Source: Selaginella moellendorffii (Eukaryota; Plantae; Lycopodiophyta). From it: a DNA stretch of 9,320 bases. The stretch is from positions 1 to 9,320 of the forward strand of contig NW_003314608.1 in NCBI RefSeq assembly GCF_000143415.4. Reading direction: 5' to 3'. The translations under genes and the position numbers were made by a program. The notes under the pieces were generated by a model, which worked only from the letters and a program-made list of their open reading frames with translations, was not told the DNA's origin and made no database searches. This document shows positions 187 to 9,320 of this stretch, in pieces (positions within the stretch are counted from its first letter, which is position 1; each line of letters opens with the position of its first letter).

Positions 187-380
187 TGTAAGCAACCAAA
201 GGGAACGACTCGAGAGACGATCCATGGGGTTCAAATATAGAGGGAAAGGGCCCATGAATAAGAGTGCACCCCCTTTTCCAATCGGTTAAGGGTCTTGGGA
301 TATTTGGGGTTAAGCGTCCTTGGGTTTGAATAGTACTGGGCTGGGTGACCTCCCGGGAAGTCCAAACTAAGGAGCCTACA
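187..380 (+). mobile_element. LTR-A (Cassandra-like, 5S-containing), copy 1
   Basis: Starts TGTAAGC right after GTGGTGGAT and ends GCCTACA (6/7 terminal inverted repeat), 2 nt before a tRNA-iMet PBS. The 3' end is firm; the 5' end is inferred from the PPT and terminal inverted repeat. Confidence 0.82.
309..363 (+). promoter_or_regulatory. 5S rRNA-derived fragment (Pol III type-1 internal control region: box A, IE, box C) inside LTR; not a full 5S gene
   Basis: GTTAAGCGTCCTTGGGTTTGAATAGTACTGGGCTGGGTGACCTCCCGGGAAGTCC aligns ungapped to about nt 51-105 of plant 5S rRNA as I recall it (GTTAAGCGTGCTTGGGCGAGAGTAGTACTAGGATGGGTGACCTCCCGGGAAGTCC; 48/55). The 5' 50 nt and the 3' end of 5S are absent. 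Confidence 0.93.
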
Positions 381-382
381 TT

Positions 383-394
383 TGGTATCAGAGC
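383..394 (+). promoter_or_regulatory. Primer binding site (tRNA-iMet), PBS-a
   Basis: TGGTATCAGAGC, the canonical complement of the plant initiator tRNA-Met 3' end, 2 nt after ...TACA. Confidence 0.93.
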
Positions 395-2864
395 TGTTCC
401 TTAGTCCAACTTTTATTGGTGCTCAAGTATATCACCACTAGTGTTGGCATCGGAAGGTCCGAGGAGTGGGCCTATCCTTGAGGAGTAGCAAGTCGGGAAG
501 ACATGGCTCTCCATTACAGTTCATGTATAAACTTGTAGACGAGGTGGTGGATAGAAAAGGGCCAATAATGGAACGACTTTGGGATCTTGGGAACAGTGCA
601 AGGTTTTCCTCATTGAGTTGAGGATGTGATCCGGATGAGCATTTGTCTCAGCAAATTGGCTAAGGTTGTTGTGGTAAACAACTAAAGTTGGGATCACGGG
701 AAAGATAGAGACTCCAAAACAATAAAGGAGTCACAAAATTATCCTCATATAGTTGAGGTTGGTGCTCATGAATGTGAGACCAGAGGTAATGACCGTGGGA
801 GGTCAAATACGGAAGAGGACTCAAGTCCTTGAAATGGTAGCCAGGGCTACCTTTAATAAATGCTGGAACAACTCAAGGAGTTGGGGGGTGTACTTAGGGA
901 TGAGTTGGTGTTCTCATCACATGGACAAGTAGTCCTAAGGGGCAAAGGTTGCCCCCAGAGAACAAAATCAAGTGTCGGAGTAACACTTGTGAAAATAGTC
1001 CTTTTGAGTAGGACAGGAATGCAAGAAGTGTATTCTAGTGAGCTAGTGCCTCATAAGTAGGACCTTACGGGTCTGTGGATTAACTAAGTCCAAAACTGTT
1101 GGATGACTCAAGTAGAGTCAACGGATGGTCCTAAAAGGACTGATGGAAGCATTTGGACTGAGGTGTGTTGTACCCCACAAAGGATGGGAGGGGATCATAG
1201 GATCCAAGGATGAGAACAGAGGGTATCTCATCGATGGCAAAATGTGCCATGCTAAAGTTATGGGAAAGGTGTTCCCAGAAGAAAACAACTTTGACATAAA
1301 GTTGTGTGTGACCTCTATGGTGCAGTGCTAACGGATGGTTGGCATGAGAAAGAGCGGTGTTGGTCTTGGCAAAGACTTAGACACGAAGGGGAAATGTCAT
1401 AGAGGTAGGCTCGTGGAGCCGATGGTGTGGAGACACCAAATGTGCCAAGGTGTGATACCTTGAGGCTATGTTGGTGGGTTCATGAGAACCCCTTGCCAAA
1501 GGAATCCCAATGGAAATGGGAATAGCATAGCCTAAGCTGCAGAGCATGCAGTTGGAGTGTGGTGACCCAGATAATGATGGAGGTGTGGAAGCACTAGCAA
1601 TGAGTTGTAGGACTTGACAACTATGAGGCAACTAAGCAAGAGATGCAAAATAACTGGTTAAACGGGTAAAAGGTAGCTACCCAAGACTTCTTAATAGCAT
1701 AGGGAAGTTGGATATACCCTTACGGGGGATAAGTTGCTTGTGTTGCGATATAGTAAGTCAATGTCATAAAAGGAAATACTCATTGTCAAGGAAGCCATCA
1801 TTGGGACACCCAAACACTCTAGAACACCAGAAGGTGGTGTTTGATGTCGCGAGGGCAATGGATAAAGCCCAAGGGACTAAGTCCCTAGCGAATGATGGAT
1901 AGAAGGTGCTATCCAAATGTCCAAGGTTGCGGAGACAGGAGAGGACTGTTTACCCAAGTTGGACAAAGCCAAAAATGGAATTTTGGCAAGGCTAGGGATG
2001 GGCATATAAAGGCCCATAAGCAACAACGTAATCCCAGTGTGTGGGATTATAGGGTGAGCATACCTGGATTGAGGAACCACTCCCTAGGCTATTGGGTAGG
2101 TTCATCCCTAAGAATACTTGCTAAAGCATGATAGAAAGTGCAAAGCTATCCTCCTGGTCTGGAGGAGAATGACCAAAGGAAAGGTGTGAAGCCAAAAAGC
2201 AAGAAGTAAGGGGATAGAACCGAACCGTAGGAATCAAAGGGCATAACCAAGGTTGGTTATGCCAGCTGGGAGTGGAGAATCAAGTGGGGGCTTGAGGGTG
2301 TTGCCGCTAGCAACCGTGATGCCATGGAGAGTCTAAAATATGGAATTGTCCATGTTAGACTATGTGGCATTTGGAAGGCTTGCAAAAAGGGAGGCCTTAG
2401 CAAGCTGAGGGACAGAGTTCCTTCAAGGTTCCCAAAGACGATTCTAGGTAGCTTAGTACCTAGAAAGGCCAAGTGTAAATGGTTCATGGAATGCGCGAAA
2501 TCAGAGTGGCGCAGCAGAAGCGTGGTCTTGAAGCTTGCCATGAGGCAAGGCTATCAAGGTTAGGGAAGTAGTTCTTGAGTGTTCAAAGAGAGGGCTTTGA
2601 ACGAAAGTCGATGGTCAAGGACTTTCACGCTTATGCAGGAACCATGTTACAGTGGTCGGAGGACTTGCCAAGCGAGATTGGCACGTCGGGGGAACAAATA
2701 CCCTAGTTGAAGGTGATAACTTCAAAAAGGGTGGGCCATGGGGCCGAGCATGGAGGAGTCCATGCATGATCACAGACATGTCAAGTGAGAGGACTTGGCA
2801 GTGTGGAGGAACTAGGTTCCTAAGCTGTGATCTGTAGCGCGCTTTAAAAATAATTTGGTGCACC

Positions 2865-2979
2865 GGCGTGGGGAGTCACGCCAGGCATCTTGTGTGATGC
2901 CGTCCGTAGATGCATATACGGAGGTTGGGTTCGAGTCCCGACCCTCTAGTGCTTGGGTTCGAGTCCCAAATCACTAGGG
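2865..2979 (+). other. Five back-to-back hairpins with two T-loop/B-box motifs (tRNA-like structure)
   Basis: Stems at 2865-2882, 2884-2901, 2903-2922, 2923-2943 and 2944-2979; GGTTCGAGTCC at 2928-2938 and 2956-2966. Confidence 0.55.
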
Positions 2980-3000
2980 TGTGGTGATGGTTTGGAATAT

Positions 3001-3270
3001 GAGGACACTCATATTTCGGTGGTCATGGACTCTCAGTGGGGAGACTGGTTTGGGCACACCGCCAAGCGAGGGATGCCTCGGAGTCGTGATGCACGGTTAG
3101 ATTGCTTAGTGTGAAAGCTCGGCATATCTAACTTGAACGCTTTGGTGCGAGTGGCACCAAGGACGTGGTGAGTGAGATGGGGACACCTAATCTCAGTTGC
3201 TATGGACCCTTGGCCGGAAGGGCTGGCTTGGGCGCACCGCCAAGTGTGGGGGATGCCCCCGGGGTCGTAG
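3001..3270 (+). repeat. Diverged direct duplication, offset ~178 bp
   Basis: CTGGTTTGGGCACACCGCCAAGCGAGGGATGCCTCGGAGTCGT (3045-3087) vs CTGGCTTGGGCGCACCGCCAAGTGTGGGGGATGCCCCCGGGGTCGT (3223-3268); upstream GGACAC and ATGGAC words are also shared. Confidence 0.75.
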
Positions 3271-4297
3271 TTAACAAATTAAAGGTCTGGAAGACCTAGT
3301 ACCTATTGGCAAACCTGTTAAGGTGCCGAGGTGAGATCACTAGGTGATCTTGTGGCTAAATAAGGACAAGGTCCTTGTTTGGGTTAAGGAATAAGGTTCC
3401 TAGTTCAAAGTGTTGATTTGAACTATTGATGATGGTGTGGCTTGGTCAAGGTGACCAAGTGGGAAAAGCACCCTAGGGAAATGAGCTATGTCATTGCGAT
3501 GGCATAGTGTGTCCAAGGAAAGTAGTCTCTAAAGAGACCCATGGGAGGGTCACAAAGTTGGGCCGTGGATAGAGCCCACAGCAGAAGATGCTAAAGAGAC
3601 TTACTAGGGGCGAACACCCTAGTCTTGGCAAAGCAGAGCCTTTGCTAAGGAATCACAAGAATACCTCAAGGAGGGAAGTAGAGATTCGATATTGCTTGGT
3701 GCAACAATCAATGGATAGGAGCAAAAGATGAGTGGCCAAGATAGGGCCGTGGAATCCCTTGGAAGGAATCCAAGTGACAAAGTTAGGCGAGGAACACTAA
3801 TGTGTTGGACGCTAACAAATTCCGGAAAAGGAAGTGTGTTTCCAAGGATGAATTCCGAATTGCTCTGATTTGGCGAAAGTGGAAGCTCCAAGGGAGGGAG
3901 CGGTAAGGTAGCCAAATGATAGGGCCATGGACAGCCCTAGCACAAAGTATGATAAATGGAACTTAGTGCCCAAGGTGGCACGAAATAGAAGAGAGGATGA
4001 TGGTGCCCTCAAGTAATGAGCTTCCTAGGATGGGGAAGTGGAGTTGCACAATCTGTGCAATGCAAGGTGTTGGAGACACCTAGGAAATTGACTTCCAAAA
4101 GTCAAAAGAGTAAAAGTTCCAAGGTGCAAACGTTCAATAGATGGAAATTGAGACTACTTGAGAAGGAGTAGCGGGATTGACTTAGAGAAGGGTCTCTAAA
4201 AGGTTTAGCGAGAACTAAACCAATAAAAGGAGAGAACCACTACATGTGGTCCAATTAGTCTCTAAGTTGGAGAGACAACCCCTTTAAAGGATAGGTA

Positions 4298-4432
4298 AGG
4301 CATGGTGAGCCTTTGGTGTCAAACCATTGAGGAATATGCAAAAGGCATGGTGAGCCTTCAATGGCAAACCATTGACGAATATGGAGAAGGCATGGTGAGC
4401 CTTCAATGTCAAACCATTGACAAATATTGGCT
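4298..4432 (+). repeat. 45-bp tandem repeat x3
   Basis: AGGCATGGTGAGCCTT...CAAACCATTGA..AATAT starting at 4298, 4343 and 4388. Confidence 0.92.
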
Positions 4433-4490
4433 AGGTGCCAAGGATGGAAATGGTAACACATGCGGGTGTTACTTTATAAAATGGTTTACC

Positions 4491-4531
4491 GTTCGATGAG
4501 GACATCGAACTTCGTCTATGGGTGGTGGAGT
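4491..4531 (+). promoter_or_regulatory. Second hairpin + PPT-like module
   Basis: GTTCGATG-AGGA-CATCGAAC perfect stem (4491-4510), then GGGTGGTGGAGT abutting TGTGAG. Same layout and same 21-nt hairpin-to-TG spacing as 148-186. Confidence 0.65.
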
Positions 4532-4755
4532 TGTGAGACACAAAATCCCTAGGCCCCAAAGTAGAGCCGGAAAGGGTGCCACGTGGTAGTGGCCGAAGCG
4601 AGAGCCAAACGAGCGTAACACGTTTGGACCAAAAGCTCCGACTTGAAAAGACAAGAGCGGGAGTGGAACTCCCAACGAAGTGCTCGAGGAACGAGCACGA
4701 AGCGAGCAAAAGGCGAGGCTCCAAAAAGGGACCCAAAAGGACCAACACATGACAC

Positions 4756-5210
4756 GTGGGAGTCCGAAGTGGAGTCCGAGATGGACCCGAGATGGAGTCC
4801 AAGATGGAGTCCGAAGTGGAGTCCGAGGTGGACCCGAGATGGACCCGAGTTGGAGTCCGAAGTGGAGTCCGAGATGGACCCGAGATGGAGTCCGAGATGG
4901 AGTCCGAGATGGAGTCCGAGGTGGACCCGAGATGGACCCGAGTTGGAGTCCGAAGTGGAGTCCGAGATGGACCCGAGATGGAGTCCGAGATGGAGTCCGA
5001 GATGGAGTCCGAGATGGAGTCCGAGGTGGACCCGAGATGGACCCGAAATGGAGTCCGAGATGGAGTCCGAGATGGACCCGAGATGGAGTCCGAGATGGAG
5101 TCCGAGATGGACCCGAGATGGACCCAAGATGGAGTCCGAGATGGAGTCCGAGATGGACCCGAGATGGAGTCCGAGATGGAGTCTGAGATGGAGTCCGAGA
5201 TGGAGTCCGA
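4756..5210 (+). repeat. Minisatellite of 12-mer GATGGAGTCCGA and 11-mer GATGGACCCGA in higher-order units
   Basis: Parsed directly: higher-order units at 4756-4848, 4849-4941, 4942-5046, 5047-5127 and partial 5128-5210. Confidence 0.95.
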
Positions 5211-5228
5211 AGTCGAGACCGAGACCGG

Positions 5229-5260
<32 letters not shown>

Positions 5261-5366
5261 TCGGGACCGAGACCGAGACCGAGGCCAAGGCCGAGACCGA
5301 GCCCGAGCCCGAGTCCGAGTCCGAATCCGAGTCCGAGTCCGAGTCCGAGTCCGAGTCCGAGTCCGG
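5211..5366 (+). repeat. Hexamer microsatellite (GNCCGA) x ~26
   Basis: GACCGA run grading through GGCCGA/GCCCGA to a GTCCGA run. Confidence 0.95.
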
Positions 5367-6371
5367 AGCCTGAGAGGGTGAAAGCCCAAAGCATTCGTCT
5401 CCCAGACCCTGGGGGGTTTGGTGAGCTCCAAAAGTATAGTAGGGGGAGGACTGTAGTGGAGCCAGTTTGGCTAGGAAAGGCCAGTTTGGCCCAGGAAGGC
5501 CGGACCCAGTGTTGGGTGATGAGCTGCCCACTGAGAAGTCCAAGACTAGAGTGAACACGGACCGACAAGTGGGGTAGCTTGGTGAAGTGTTCAAGAGCCG
5601 GCTCTAGTTCCCCCGGGAGATCGACTGGCCGATGCTCCCAGTCCAAGTGTGGGTGGCACTACCTACTTGGATACCTGGTGTGGCTCAACGGAACCCGCTC
5701 TAAGCCCATGGCTAGAGCACCCAAGGGCAGAAGGCGAGGAGAGTACCCAGGTGGCTCGTTTAAGGCCACGGTGTTCCGAAATGTTGTCCCAAAGGCCCAG
5801 ACTGTGGAAAGGAAGAGGAGCAGTCCTCTGGGGTAGTGACCAAGGACACAGTCGTGTGGTGAGGAAGTCCCAGAGGACCGTGGGACTTAGTGGTCGGGCC
5901 TGTGGGTCTCGATCCAGTGGCAGTGTTGGCAAACATGGCCAGGGGCAGAAAGGGACTTAGTGGGGACTGACAGAGGGATATTGGGGAAGGCTATTCCCCT
6001 TGTCGATGGGCATCCTAAGGATGCTAAGGAGTGGATCTGAGATGACCACTCACGGATGGTTTGCCTAGTCTTGGAGAGCCAAGACGGTGATGCAAGTGGT
6101 ATTGGACTACCAGTGTGGCAAAGGTGATTGGGCATGGCCTTAGCGTAACGGGCTGCTATGTCGGTGGTACCTTTGAGTGTCAGTCATGGGATCGGACACG
6201 TGGAGCACTTGGACCAAGTGCAAATGTTGAGTGGCATGGATGCCATTCTCGGGGCTAGCAAGTCCCAAGTCCTGGATTGGACTTATGGAGGTTGTGAATG
6301 AGACTCCTCCAAGTGGTCAGAGGTGTGGTTAAGTGACTAAAGTAGAATGGAAAATTTAGTCGCTTACAATT

Positions 6372-6383
6372 TGGTATCGGAGC
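6372..6383 (+). promoter_or_regulatory. Second primer binding site (tRNA-iMet, one G-U wobble), PBS-b
   Basis: TGGTATCGGAGC (11/12 to canonical), 3 nt after the LTR-end-like GCTTACA (6362-6368). Confidence 0.8.
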
Positions 6384-6535
6384 GGTCTCAGGTCCGACTC
6401 TGTTGGTTGGCTAAGGGAATCACACCACATGTTGATTGACATCTGGCTGGTCCAGTTTGCTCCCGCTGGGCTCGACCCGAGGGGTAGGGTGTCAAGAGAG
6501 CAGGGCTCTCGGGAGAGCTATGGCTCTCAGCTTCC

Positions 6536-6574
6536 GTTCACGAGGGCGTGAACTTGCAGGGAAACGTGGTGGAT
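6536..6574 (+). promoter_or_regulatory. Hairpin + PPT-like module upstream of LTR-A copy 2
   Basis: Identical to 148-186. Confidence 0.7.
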
Positions 6575-6768
6575 TGTAAGCAACCAAAGGGAACGACTCG
6601 AGAGACGATCCATGGGGTTCAAATATAGAGGGAAAGGGCCCATGAATAAGAGTGCACCCCCTTTTCCAATCGGTTAAGGGTCTTGGGATATTTGGGGTTA
6701 AGCGTCCTTGGGTTTGAATAGTACTGGGCTGGGTGACCTCCCGGGAAGTCCAAACTAAGGAGCCTACA
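6575..6768 (+). mobile_element. LTR-A (Cassandra-like, 5S-containing), copy 2
   Basis: Identical by eye to 187-380, with the same flanking PPT and PBS. Confidence 0.82.
6697..6751 (+). promoter_or_regulatory. 5S rRNA-derived internal control region fragment, copy 2
   Basis: Identical to 309-363. Confidence 0.93.
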
Positions 6769-6770
6769 TT

Positions 6771-6782
6771 TGGTATCAGAGC
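6771..6782 (+). promoter_or_regulatory. Primer binding site (tRNA-iMet), PBS-a copy 2
   Basis: TGGTATCAGAGC after the second LTR-A. Confidence 0.93.
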
Positions 6783-9320
6783 TGTTCCTTAGTCCAACTT
6801 TTATTGGTGCTCAAGTATATCACCACTAGTGTTGGCATCGGAAGGTCCGAGGAGTGGGCCTATCCTTGAGGAGTAGCAAGTCGGGAAGACATGGCTCTCC
6901 ATTACAGTTCATGTATAAACTTGTAGACGAGGTGGTGGATAGAAAAGGGCCAATAATGGAACGACTTTGGGATCTTGGGAACAGTGCAAGGTTTTCCTCA
7001 TTGAGTTGAGGATGTGATCCGGATGAGCATTTGTCTCAGCAAATTGGCTAAGGTTGTTGTGGTAAACAACTAAAGTTGGGATCACGGGAAAGATAGAGAC
7101 TCCAAAACAATAAAGGAGTCACAAAATTATCCTCATATAGTTGAGGTTGGTGCTCATGAATGTGAGACCAGAGGTAATGACCGTGGGAGGTCAAATACGG
7201 AAGAGGACTCAAGTCCTTGAAATGGTAGCCAGGGCTACCTTTAATAAATGCTGGAACAACTCAAGGAGTTGGGGGGTGTACTTAGGGATGAGTTGGTGTT
7301 CTCATCACATGGACAAGTAGTCCTAAGGGGCAAAGGTTGCCCCCAGAGAACAAAATCAAGTGTCGGAGTAACACTTGTGAAAATAGTCCTTTTGAGTAGG
7401 ACAGGAATGCAAGAAGTGTATTCCAGTGAGCTAGTGCCTCACAAGTAGGACCTTACGGGTCTGTGGATTAACTAAGTCCAAAACTGTTGGATGACTCAAG
7501 TAGAGTCAACGGATGGTCCTAAAAGGACTGATGGAAGCATTTGGACTGAGGTGTGTTGTACCCCACAAAGGATGGGAGGGGATCATAGGATCCAAGGATG
7601 AGAACAGAGGGTATCTCATCGATGGCAAAATGTGCCATGCTAAAGTTATGGGAAAGGTGTTCCCAGAAGAAAACAACTTTGACATAAAGTTGTGTGTGAC
7701 CTCTATGGTGCAGTGCTAACGGATGGTTGGCATGAGAAAGAGCGGTGTTGGTCTTGGCAAAGACTTAAACACGAAGGGGAAATGTCATAGAGGTAGGCTC
7801 GTGGAGCCGATGGTGTGGAGACACCAAATGTGCCAAGGTGTGATACCTTGAGGCTATGTTGGTGGGTTCATGAGAACCCCTTGCCAAAGGAATCCCAATG
7901 GAAATGGGAATAGCATAGCCTAAGCTGCAGAGCATGCAGTTGGAGTGTGGTGACCCAGATAATGATGGAGGTGTGGAAGCACTAGCAATGAGTTGTAGGA
8001 CTTGACAATTACAAGGCAACTAAGCAAGAGGTGCAAAATAACTGGTTAAACGGGTAGAAGGTAGCTACCCAAGACTTCTTAATAGCATAGGGAAGTTGGA
8101 TATACCCTTACGAAGGATAACTTGCTTGTGTTGCGATATAGTAAGTCAATGTCATAAAAGGAAATACTCATTGTCAAGAAAGCCATCATTGGGACACCCG
8201 AACACTCTAGAACACCAGAAGGTGGTGTTTGATGTCGCGAGGGCAATGGATAAAGCCCAAGGGACTAAGTCCCTAGCGAATGATGGATAGAAGGTGCTAT
8301 CCAAATGTCCAAAGTTGCGGAGACAGGAGAGGACTGTTTACCCGAGTTGGACAAAGCCAAAAATGGAATTTTGGCAAGGCTAGTGATGGGCATGTAAAGG
8401 CCCATAAGCAACAACGTAATCCCGGTGTGTGGGATTATAGGGTGAGCATACCTGGATTGAGGAACCACTCCCTAGGCTATTGGGTAGGTTCATCCCTAAG
8501 AATACTTGCTAAAGCATGATAGAAAGTGCAAAGCTATCCTCCTGGTCTGGAGGAGAATGACCAAAGGAAAGGTGTGAAGCCAAAAAGCAAGAAGTAAGGG
8601 GATAGAACCGAACCGTAGGAATCAAAGGGCATAACCAAGGTTGGTTATGCCAGCTGGGAGTGGAGAATCAAGTGGGGGCTTGAGGGTGTTGCCGCTAGCA
8701 ACCGTGATGCCATGGAGAGTCTAAAATATGGAATTGTCCATGTTAGACTATGTGGCATTTGGAAGGCTTGCAAAAAGGGAGGCCTTAGCAAGCTGAGGGA
8801 CAGAGTTCCTTCAAGGTTCCCAAAGACGATTCTAGGTAGCTTAGTACCTAGAAAGGCCAAGTGTAAATGGTTCATGGAATGCGCGAAATCAGAGTGGCGC
8901 AGCAGAAGCGTGGTCTTGAAGCTTGCCATGAGGCAAGGCTATCAAGGTTAGGGAAGTAGTTCCCGAGTGTTCAAGGAGAGGGCTTTGAACGAAAGTCGAT
9001 GGTCAAGGACTTTCACGCTTATGCAGGAACCATGTTACAGTGGTCGGAGGACTTGCCAAGCGAGATTGGCACGTCGGGGGAACAAATACCCTAGTTGAAG
9101 GTGATAACTTCAAAAAGGGTGGGCCATGGGGCCGAGCATGGAGGAGTCCATGCATAATCACAGACTTGTCAAGTGAGAGGACTTGGCAGTGTGGAGGAAC
9201 TAGGTTCCTAAGCTGTGATCTGTAGCGCGCTTTAAAAATAAGTTGGTGCACCGGCGTGGGGAGTCACGCCAGGCATCTTGTGTGATGCCGTCCGTAGATG
9301 CATATACGGAGGTTGGGTTC

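Follow-up and report, generated by a model that had tools for sequence, protein, structure and literature searches.

How a 5S-bearing LTR of ordinary Cassandra size comes to stand on both sides of more than 6 kb of non-coding DNA is the question raised by this locus, a stretch of 9,320 nucleotides referred to below, at its whole length, as the window. An earlier note on this DNA read it as a "giant Cassandra", with 5S-promoter LTRs around a non-coding interior of about 6.2 kb. The answer that we favour, tentatively and with a confidence somewhat short of even, is that the window is a recombinant Cassandra array, a LARD-sized non-autonomous derivative with 5S LTRs.

The window is built on a repeat with a period of 6,388 bp, as the earlier note had recognized. 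Positions 1-2932 recur at 6389-9320, a second, partial copy of the unit on the + strand that emerges from self-comparison at the 6388-bp offset, with 25 mismatches (21 of them transitions), no indels and 99.15% identity. The visible part amounts to 1.46 periods, the repeat runs past both window ends, and neither a repeat end nor flanking host DNA lies inside. To say that the unit was amplified in tandem, as had been proposed, therefore goes beyond these 1.46 units, since the window would look no different if it showed parts of two long LTRs, each of at least 2.9 kb, from one LARD-like element. Along the window the parts follow the order int'-LTR-int-X-int'-LTR-int-X, where int and int' are internal domains and X is a 5.8-kb segment; the distance from the start of one LTR to the end of the next is 6,582 bp, and the interior between the LTRs is 6,194 bp. 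Divergence between the copies is patchy, with 1 mismatch in the first 1035 bp of the overlap and 24 in the other 1897 (Fisher p = 4.6e-4), as expected for conversion or unequal exchange within an array.

The first copy of the Cassandra-type LTR (187-380, + strand; 194 bp, TGTAAG..CCTACA) lies between a PPT at 171-186 (PPT') and a PBS at 383-394, carries the 5S signature inside and has a terminal inverted repeat of 5/6. The borders of this LTR are unreadable from the 6388-bp repeat itself and were fixed independently by the paralogy of the flanking internal domains. TG..CA ends belong to the 194-bp LTR only, X beginning with AG. The second copy (6575-6768, + strand) stands at the 6388-bp offset and is identical to the first, with 0 mismatches. 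While the identity of the LTRs had been rightly noted, it does not date the event as recent amplification or homogenization, given that the overlap has a single mismatch in its first 1035 bp anyway.

The 5S rRNA-derived domain, identified through Rfam RF00001 and the box pattern, occupies 290-377 and again 6678-6765 on the + strand, with box A at 308-319 and box C at 338-350. Both Rfam matches score 30.3 bits (E 0.0047), under the gathering score of 38, and really comprise the 3' half only, 36 model positions of the 5' half being replaced by 4 nt. The published Cassandra signature of box A, 18 nt and box C (Kalendar 2020) is matched at 308-350 and 6696-6738 with 2 mismatches, against 0 matches in 200 shuffles. 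A duplicate resembling box A is present at 283-305 in the LTR. An array of complete 5S rRNA genes (a gene of ~120 nt with a short spacer) does not fit the score under the family threshold and the loss of the 5' half, and the LTR itself was rejected as a structured RNA (z = +1.1).

Published Cassandra PPTs and the initiator-Met (iMet) tRNA PBS provided the reference for the remaining motifs. The PBS, TGGTATCAGAGC, is an exact 12-mer of the published motif on the + strand (383-394, also 6771-6782), 2 nt past the terminal CA of the LTR. On the other side, PPT' (171-186) reads ..GGGAAACGTGGTGGAT, ends in GTGGTGGAT and directly adjoins the TG start at 187; it is similar to published Cassandra PPTs such as GTGGTGGTGTA, GGGGGGTGGAT and AAGGGGGCGAT, a likeness judged by eye and without a statistical model. 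The parse put forward in the earlier note, a 194-bp LTR with an iMet PBS and a PPT, is thus upheld, and its placement in the 5S-LTR (Cassandra) lineage agrees with the box A/box C pair at 18-nt spacing and with the fern-like dimensions.

The stretch from LTR to LTR is composite. It opens (170 nt) and closes (203 nt) with diverged copies of an internal domain of normal Cassandra type (paralogy z = 10; 75% identity over ungapped columns), each with a PBS and a PPT of its own, and X lies between the two. The proposed 6.2-kb interior is non-coding, as stated, but it is not a single domain. The domain int (395-552, + strand), which has the size of a fern Cassandra internal domain, closes with a PPT at 538-552 (GACGAGGTGGTGGAT), and its paralogue int' (6384-6574, + strand) closes with PPT' at 6559-6574, the 3' part of int' being also positions 1-186 of the window. 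A second PBS (PBS', 6372-6383, + strand; TGGTATCGGAGC, 11/12) came from a scan with the iMet PBS motif, which at no more than 1 mismatch gave 3 matches in the window vs 0.04 expected. The alignment of int with int' goes ~26 nt beyond the PPT and then ends, marking a remnant of an LTR start at 553-578 (+ strand) that has GGAACGACT in common with 204-212, and alignment also places a remnant of an LTR end, GCTTACA, at 6362-6368 (+ strand; compare GCCTACA at 374-380). What is left of an LTR at the borders of X is hence ~26 nt of its start and 7 nt of its end, and PBS', the second PPT and both stubs sit exactly at those borders. To judge from this arrangement of the sequence, X occupies the slot of the next Cassandra LTR, and the unit is a Cassandra array with alternate LTRs replaced.

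Most of X is taken up by X1 (581-4740, + strand), a non-coding chain of short hairpins recognized from stem counts, MFE, predicted structure and loop composition. It holds ~150 hairpins with a median length of 20 nt and a 7-bp stem, and perfect stems of at least 6 bp number 57 vs 5.0 +/- 2.5 in shuffles, the same ratio being 1.2-1.9-fold in unrelated controls. The MFE z is about -3, the chain is unbroken across position 2932, and on the + strand the loops are G/A-rich and C-poor. This dense chain of short perfect hairpins with its biased loops is new here. Substitutions between the 1.46 copies compared are not depleted in stems, where 19 of the 25 fall, and the stem transitions keep a G:U pair on the + strand in 13 of 17 cases (13 vs 4, p about 0.02); flanking mismatches lean toward GT over AC (26 vs 12), a difference that is not significant alone. 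The strand-specific features of X share the orientation of the LTR, for which chance expectation is 50%, and the strand evidence that these patterns suggest for X is modest.

Downstream lies a microsatellite (4759-5365) in which the 12-mer GGAGTCCGAGAT occurs ~45 times, in a 93-bp higher-order unit, followed by a 6-mer repeated ~25 times; its ORFs of 168-387 aa are repeat artefacts. It is followed by X2 (5366-6361, + strand), which is non-coding, GC-richer (55-60%) and has fewer hairpins. Several other identities for X were considered and rejected. Apart from the stubs it has no significant similarity to the 194-bp LTR, which speaks against a diverged LTR, and Pfam gave no signal of a decayed gag-pol. 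At 2856-2985, ARAGORN and Rfam found neither a tRNA gene nor a known RNA. A reading that makes X the "real" LTR and the Cassandra block its interior was rejected as well, there being no TG at the start of X and the window still needing two interiors.

Between the LTRs no ORF of more than 103 aa lies outside the microsatellite, and the 20 longest stop-free segments contain no Pfam family, including any gag, RT, integrase, RNase H or protease signal. A LARD-sized unit with no detected coding capacity, as the earlier note described it, is what this amounts to (6,582 bp, which exceeds 4 kb, with no trace of gag/pol), while the same lack of signals leaves its suggested bridge to an autonomous partner unsupported. 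Runs of four T occur on the + strand at 411, 604, 1002 and 1981, with another at 274-277 inside the would-be 5S transcript. The run at 411-414, 31 nt past the LTR end, could act as the terminator of a short 5S-like RNA, and those at 604, 1002 and 1981 would keep Pol III from transcribing the long unit as a whole. The LTR has no canonical TATA[AT]A.

Searches for relatives used the LTR-end/PBS pattern, which gave 3 matches in metagenome contigs (L001-L003), all chance occurrences in bacterial genes, and 0 matches in genome and viral contig collections; none of the three collections contains the window, nor probably its source genome. Five ATG ORFs were absent from the protein collection by exact look-up, and no homologous proteins were found for the 387-aa microsatellite ORF, the 103-aa ORF (5649-5957) or the stop-free frame across the LTR. 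An exhaustive comparison of the 94-aa ORF with protein representatives returned one spurious tandem-repeat protein (P0001) from an unrelated eukaryote assembly (L004), and four 17-26-mers of the window, sought in the full text of the literature, led to a generic plant 5S primer only. In character the sequence resembles plant DNA and not human DNA.

The recombinant-array reading starts from the anatomy, the lack of detectable coding capacity and the hairpin chain with its + strand bias. The unit would consist of one intact fern-type LTR, two old diverged internal domains and the 5.8-kb non-coding X in the slot of the neighbouring LTR, and it most likely arose when X took the place of the middle LTR in a three-LTR Cassandra. 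Its head-to-tail repetition would have come from unequal recombination between intact LTRs, the usual route to LTR-int-LTR-int-LTR. For the long unit the 5S promoter would be a passenger, because Pol III would stop at the T4 runs; RNA of full length would have to come from Pol II or from read-through, on the + strand, and X probably has a past as + strand RNA. That the unit is a local recombination product and not a mobile family is our judgement rather than a result.

The reading of the earlier note, that this is a retrotransposition-competent giant Cassandra or LARD family in which the proteins of a helper copy LTR-PBS-(int-X-int')-PPT-LTR as a single RNA, the array arising from such copies, appears to us rather unlikely. 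All the cis signals that it needs are present, ordered and intact (a TG..CA LTR with a terminal inverted repeat, an exact PBS and a PPT), and a total of ~6.6 kb is within the size range of packaged LTR-element RNAs. X is moreover RNA-like and + strand-specific along its whole length, in LTR orientation; hairpins are enriched in the internal Cassandra domain too; and transcripts of Cassandra arrays reading through LTRs have been reported, which would permit an origin of the composite by template switching. Against mobility stand the lack of a second copy in the collections searched, which probably exclude the source genome, the predicted inability of Pol III to make the RNA from an LTR that has no canonical TATA[AT]A, and the view that TRIMs with Pol III promoters are length-limited. 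A one-off rearrangement would also leave relics of just this kind (PBS', PPT and LTR stubs).

The copies might instead belong to the two LTRs of a single LARD-like element, each LTR at least 2.9 kb long. There would then be no tandem array, the Cassandra block would be a dead passenger in those LTRs, and the true internal region would lie within 2933-6388, with a length of at most 3.5 kb. In plant DNA, direct repeats that are nearly identical and stand a few kb apart are mostly LTR pairs, classical LARDs carry multi-kb LTRs, the repeat passes both window ends and may be longer than its visible part, and 0.85% divergence made up mostly of transitions is what a young LTR pair typically shows. 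We nevertheless think this improbable: iMet PBS-like sites of the unit are confined to the Cassandra block, which has two, nothing further that resembles an LTR edge was recognized in 2933-6388, the hairpin chain is continuous across 2932, and the significantly non-uniform divergence is not predicted by simple LTR ageing. Far less credible still is an assembly artefact, whether through over-extension of a repeat (circular or collapsed) or through chimeric joining of Cassandra and unrelated DNA. Assemblies often yield short stand-alone sequences of 1-2 repeat units, and over its first 1035 bp the overlap is nearly identical, but 25 substitutions with 21 transitions and no indel mark real paralogues rather than read errors or self-overlap, and both Cassandra/X junctions fall in an orderly LTR-slot arrangement.

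If the unit were mobile, 5S-LTR elements would not be held to TRIM size by Pol III, against the length argument for Pol III-promoter TRIMs, and TRIM and LARD, two classical non-autonomous classes, would be joined in one lineage. A bolder and distinctly improbable version has a mobile LARD-sized Cassandra branch that gave up Pol III for transcription by Pol II or by read-through, the ~150 stem-loops with G-rich purine loops in its 4-kb interior serving as multivalent sites for helper Gag/nucleocapsid, a packaging "sponge" that outcompetes the helper for encapsidation. If only a local rearrangement is involved, as in the recombinant-array reading, the locus would be one more case of the known plasticity of Cassandra arrays. 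Mobile or not, the locus has an unusual architecture, 4 kb that consist almost entirely of short perfect hairpins whose G-rich loops are strand-specific, and X1 could be a natural test case for hairpin creation, for example by template-switch mutation, and for the recognition of non-coding retroelement RNAs.

Among known systems, classical LARDs have multi-kb LTRs without 5S. The window resembles LARDs (large retrotransposon derivatives, e.g. Sukkula; Kalendar 2004) in exceeding 4 kb, in its LTR, PBS and PPT, in being non-coding and in an interior predicted to form extensive RNA structure, a likeness drawn from one locus whose LTRs, unlike theirs, are 194 bp, of Pol III type and 5S-bearing. 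Three-LTR tandems and chimeric non-autonomous elements are common (PMC13570524 among the sources). As far as the portions of the sugar beet survey consulted here extend (Mob DNA 2026, PMC13570524), it reports a TRIM-LARD size continuum, three-LTR tandems as the commonest tandem form, and LTRs and interiors reshuffled between families, and these portions describe no 5S-LTR element with a multi-kb interior and no hairpin-chain interior.

The closest known system is Cassandra, a TRIM with 5S-derived LTRs (Kalendar 2008, 2020; Maiwald 2024), especially that of ferns, where published LTRs measure 187-208 and internal regions 190-193, compared with an LTR of 194 bp and internal regions of 172 and 206 bp in the window. 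Box A and box C lie 18 nt apart in both, the iMet PBS and a G/T-rich PPT ending in GAT are shared, as is a tandem LTR-int-LTR organization, and the PBS is 5 nt from the 5S-like end in the window vs 8 nt reported for ferns. Unlike Cassandra, the 5S part of the window has lost its 5' half, is sub-threshold in Rfam and has a T4 run inside the would-be transcript, and each second LTR slot is filled by 5.8 kb of unrelated structured DNA. The 81 published Cassandras have internal regions of 71-309 bp and whole elements of 563-949 bp, so that 6.2 kb from LTR to LTR is about 20 times the published maximum and outside TRIM size, while the embedded int'-LTR-int block keeps the normal dimensions of a Cassandra.

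The earlier note had read this locus as a 'giant Cassandra', in which LTRs carrying a 5S promoter enclose ~6.2 kb of non-coding interior, and the LTR, PBS and PPT that it named do carry the defining features of a Cassandra. The LTR (187-380) is 194 bp long and is bounded by TGTAAG..CCTACA. The published search signature of these elements, box A RGTTAAGYRHGY, 18 nt and box C RRRATRGGTRACY (PMC7215508), is found at 308-350 with one mismatch per box, and none of 200 shuffles matches it. An exact iMet PBS, TGGTATCAGAGC, lies at 383-394, between the LTR and the internal domain and 2 nt past the terminal CA of the LTR, and a PPT, ..GGGAAACGTGGTGGAT, abuts the TG at 187 and is close to PPTs listed for Cassandra (GTGGTGGTGTA in Hordeum, GGGGGGTGGAT in Spartina and AAGGGGGCGAT in ferns; Maiwald 2024, supplementary table 2A). 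The Rfam 5S model scores 30.3 bits (E 0.0047) at 290-377 and again at 6678-6765, short of its gathering score of 38; the similarity is genuine for the 3′ half only, and the 5′ half has 4 nt in place of 36 model positions. The LTR also has two tandem copies of the box A segment from its 5S-like domain, at 283-331 (GGTTAAGGGTC.TTGGG / GGTTAAGCGTCCTTGGG), the box A-like duplicate (283-305) lying upstream of box A.

Between successive intact LTRs the giant Cassandra reading holds; what it missed is that the interior is composite. A third PBS-like site, TGGTATCGGAGC, is present at 6372-6383 (PBS′) with 11 of 12 positions matching, where 0.04 such sites are expected per window, and by alignment 6362-6388 together with 1-212 is paralogous to 373-578. 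The paralogy runs through an LTR end, a PBS, an internal domain of ~160-190 nt, a PPT and ~26 nt of LTR start. Even when the PBS is left out, the two internal domains, int (395-552) and int′ (6384-6574, represented at the start of the window by 1-186), reach an alignment score of 48, where shuffles give 18.9 +/- 2.9 (z = 10), and are 75% identical across ungapped columns. The PPT ..GGTGGTGGAT is common to both paralogous copies, the LTR-end stub at 6362-6368 reads GCTTACA where the intact LTR has GCCTACA (374-380), and the LTR-start stub of ~26 nt (553-578) includes an exact GGAACGACT; beyond these stubs, the other 5.8 kb has no further LTR similarity at either flank. The unit is ordered int′, LTR, PBS, int, stub, X, stub, PBS′, where X is the non-coding segment at 579-6361. 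The 194-bp LTR and X are each preceded by a PPT and followed by a PBS, and the arrangement is that of a Cassandra LTR-int-LTR-int array with X in place of every second LTR. Taking X itself as an LTR is the weaker parse: it starts with AG rather than TG, and two interiors would still be required.

The indels that separate int′ from int (108-165 versus 490-530) make new hairpins in int′ or perfect existing ones (GAGAGC agg GCTCTC and GTTCACG aggg CGTGAAC), the extra int′ bases concerned lying at 108-122 and 148-165. Indels that create or perfect hairpins are the kind of pattern that template-switch mutations leave, so at least some hairpins here may be mutational rather than selected in origin.

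An addition to the original finding is the hairpin chain of X1, the first part of X (about 581-4740; 43-51% GC). X1 holds 57 non-overlapping perfect Watson-Crick stems (6 bp or longer, loops of 3-8 nt) versus 5.0 +/- 2.5 in dinucleotide shuffles, whereas the same script finds an excess of only 1.2-1.9-fold in four unrelated natural loci. Local folding of the 4160 nt (pair span 40) predicts 153 stem-loops, the median one being 20 nt long with 7 pairs. The excess is weaker in the Cassandra block (3 versus 0.8 expected) and in X2 (7 versus 1.4), the third part of X (5366-6361; 55-60% GC), and MFE z has a mean near -3 for either strand across 600-5400 and near -1 in X2 and the Cassandra module. 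The palindromes are a property of the DNA, but the unpaired parts are strand-specific. Stems are symmetric in composition; loops on the + strand are 38.5% G, 31.4% A, 21% T and 9.1% C, and compared with linkers they are richer in purines (0.72 versus 0.63 +/- 0.02) and poorer in C (0.085 versus 0.156 +/- 0.018), and a larger share of them has GG (0.46 versus 0.32 +/- 0.05), the G:C ratio differing at p = 3e-7. Owing to this bias of loops and linkers, the GC skew is constant, at +0.2 to +0.35. Differences between the two copies of the unit fall in predicted stems in 19 of 25 cases, so that substitutions are not depleted there, and of 17 stem transitions 13 keep a G:U pair on the + strand and four give A:C (one-sided p = 0.025). 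Mismatches beside perfect stems are GT/TG in 26 cases versus AC/CA in 12, which is suggestive only. In essence, X looks like DNA with a single-stranded past, in + sense and in the orientation of the LTR.

Three 45-bp tandem units at 4297-4431, 80-100% identical and with two hairpins each, are evidence that local amplification can act on pairs of hairpins. The sole other internal paralogy found is a diverged direct duplication of ~90 bp in X1 (2999-3087 versus 3177-3268; 72% identical). At 2856-2985, three adjacent 6-bp hairpins precede two tandem 28-nt units, each with GGTTCGAGTCC, a motif like a tRNA T-arm or Pol III box B; these 130 nt are predicted to fold as a closed five-hairpin multiloop (z = -4.4), and neither ARAGORN nor Rfam recognises a tRNA or another known RNA in them. 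The region may be a decayed tRNA-derived SINE head.

That the interior is non-coding, as the earlier note proposed, agrees with the absence of any ORF longer than 103 aa outside the microsatellite block. This block (4759-5365), between X1 and X2, consists of GGAGTCCGAGAT ~45x, with a 93-bp higher-order unit, followed by a 6-mer ~25x, and on its two strands produces six spurious ORFs, 168-387 aa long, that overlap one another; these (4431-5646) read through the 12-mer and 6-mer repeats and have no homologues in the protein search. The 20 longest stop-free segments match no Pfam family at E < 0.05, and none comes near a curated cut-off; gag, protease, RT, RNase H and integrase are all missing among them, which leaves the suggested bridge to an autonomous partner unsupported. 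The ORFs of the window are absent from the protein collection, and word-indexed and exhaustive protein searches returned nothing relevant. The only exhaustive-search match, L004 (a locus in GCA_008121235.1, CM017787.1), is an ORF of 545 aa made of tandem repeats, in an assembly from an unrelated eukaryote, and was rejected as a relative because the match stems from repeated weak similarity. Scans at the DNA level across metagenome, prokaryote-genome and viral collections produced no more than three matches, each of them bacterial and due to chance.

The 6388-bp unit is present 1.46 times: 6389-9320 is a second copy of 1-2932, offset by exactly 6388 bp and 99.15% identical, with 25 substitutions, 21 of them transitions, and no indels. 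This transition bias and the lack of indels indicate that the copies are real paralogues rather than read errors or self-overlap, and make an assembly artefact highly improbable. The repeat runs off both ends of the window, which leaves room for another reading, one that we regard as quite unlikely: the copies would be long LTRs, of 2.9 kb or more, that belong to a single LARD-like element and carry a dead Cassandra block. Somewhat less doubtful, though still on the unlikely side, is a truly mobile family of giant Cassandras. Our tentative preference, held with a little short of even confidence, is for a local recombinant array, structurally LARD-like and of unproven mobility. Mismatches are patchy, with one in the first 1035 bp versus 24 in the following 1897 bp (Fisher p = 4.6e-4), which suggests gene conversion or recent exchange over the Cassandra module. 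CpG is depleted (observed/expected 0.56) and TpG raised (1.24), as expected for methylated eukaryotic repeat DNA, and the sequence resembles plant rather than human DNA.

Such a local recombinant array would most likely have begun as a three-LTR Cassandra, the commonest tandem form (PMC7215508; PMC13570524), whose central LTR would have been swapped for X, either at the level of DNA or through a template switch from one co-packaged RNA to another; transcripts that read through Cassandra arrays have been reported (PMC7215508). The 6388-bp repeat would then be the outcome of unequal recombination involving the two intact LTRs, and continuing exchange would fit the patchy identity. The 5S promoter is unable to make a long RNA because T4 runs occur on the + strand at 411, 604, 1002 and 1981, and another lies inside the would-be 5S transcript (274-277). 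Given these Pol III stops and the limit that, as Kojima argues (PMC10886601), Pol III processivity sets on the length of such elements, a genomic RNA of full length would depend on Pol II or on read-through.

By size convention (>4 kb, non-coding) the unit qualifies as a LARD, one known from this window alone. Classical LARDs have multi-kb LTRs without 5S, in contrast to the 194-bp LTR with a 5S part found here. As a Cassandra the unit is oversized, its 6,194-bp interior being ~20x the largest of 81 published (71-309 bp; Maiwald 2024, supplementary table 2A), and the accessible parts of the literature describe no 5S-LTR element whose interior runs to several kb. The module itself shares the dimensions of fern Cassandras (LTR 187-208 bp, internal 190-193 bp, total 565-606 bp; Maiwald 2024, supplementary table 2A), and its PBS lies 5 nt past the 5S part, where ferns have 8 nt (PMC7215508). 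It is these dimensions alone that would suggest a fern or similar source. As described in PMC13570524, non-autonomous LTR elements form a size continuum in which tandems and chimeras are frequent, which makes a recombinant of this type plausible rather than revolutionary.
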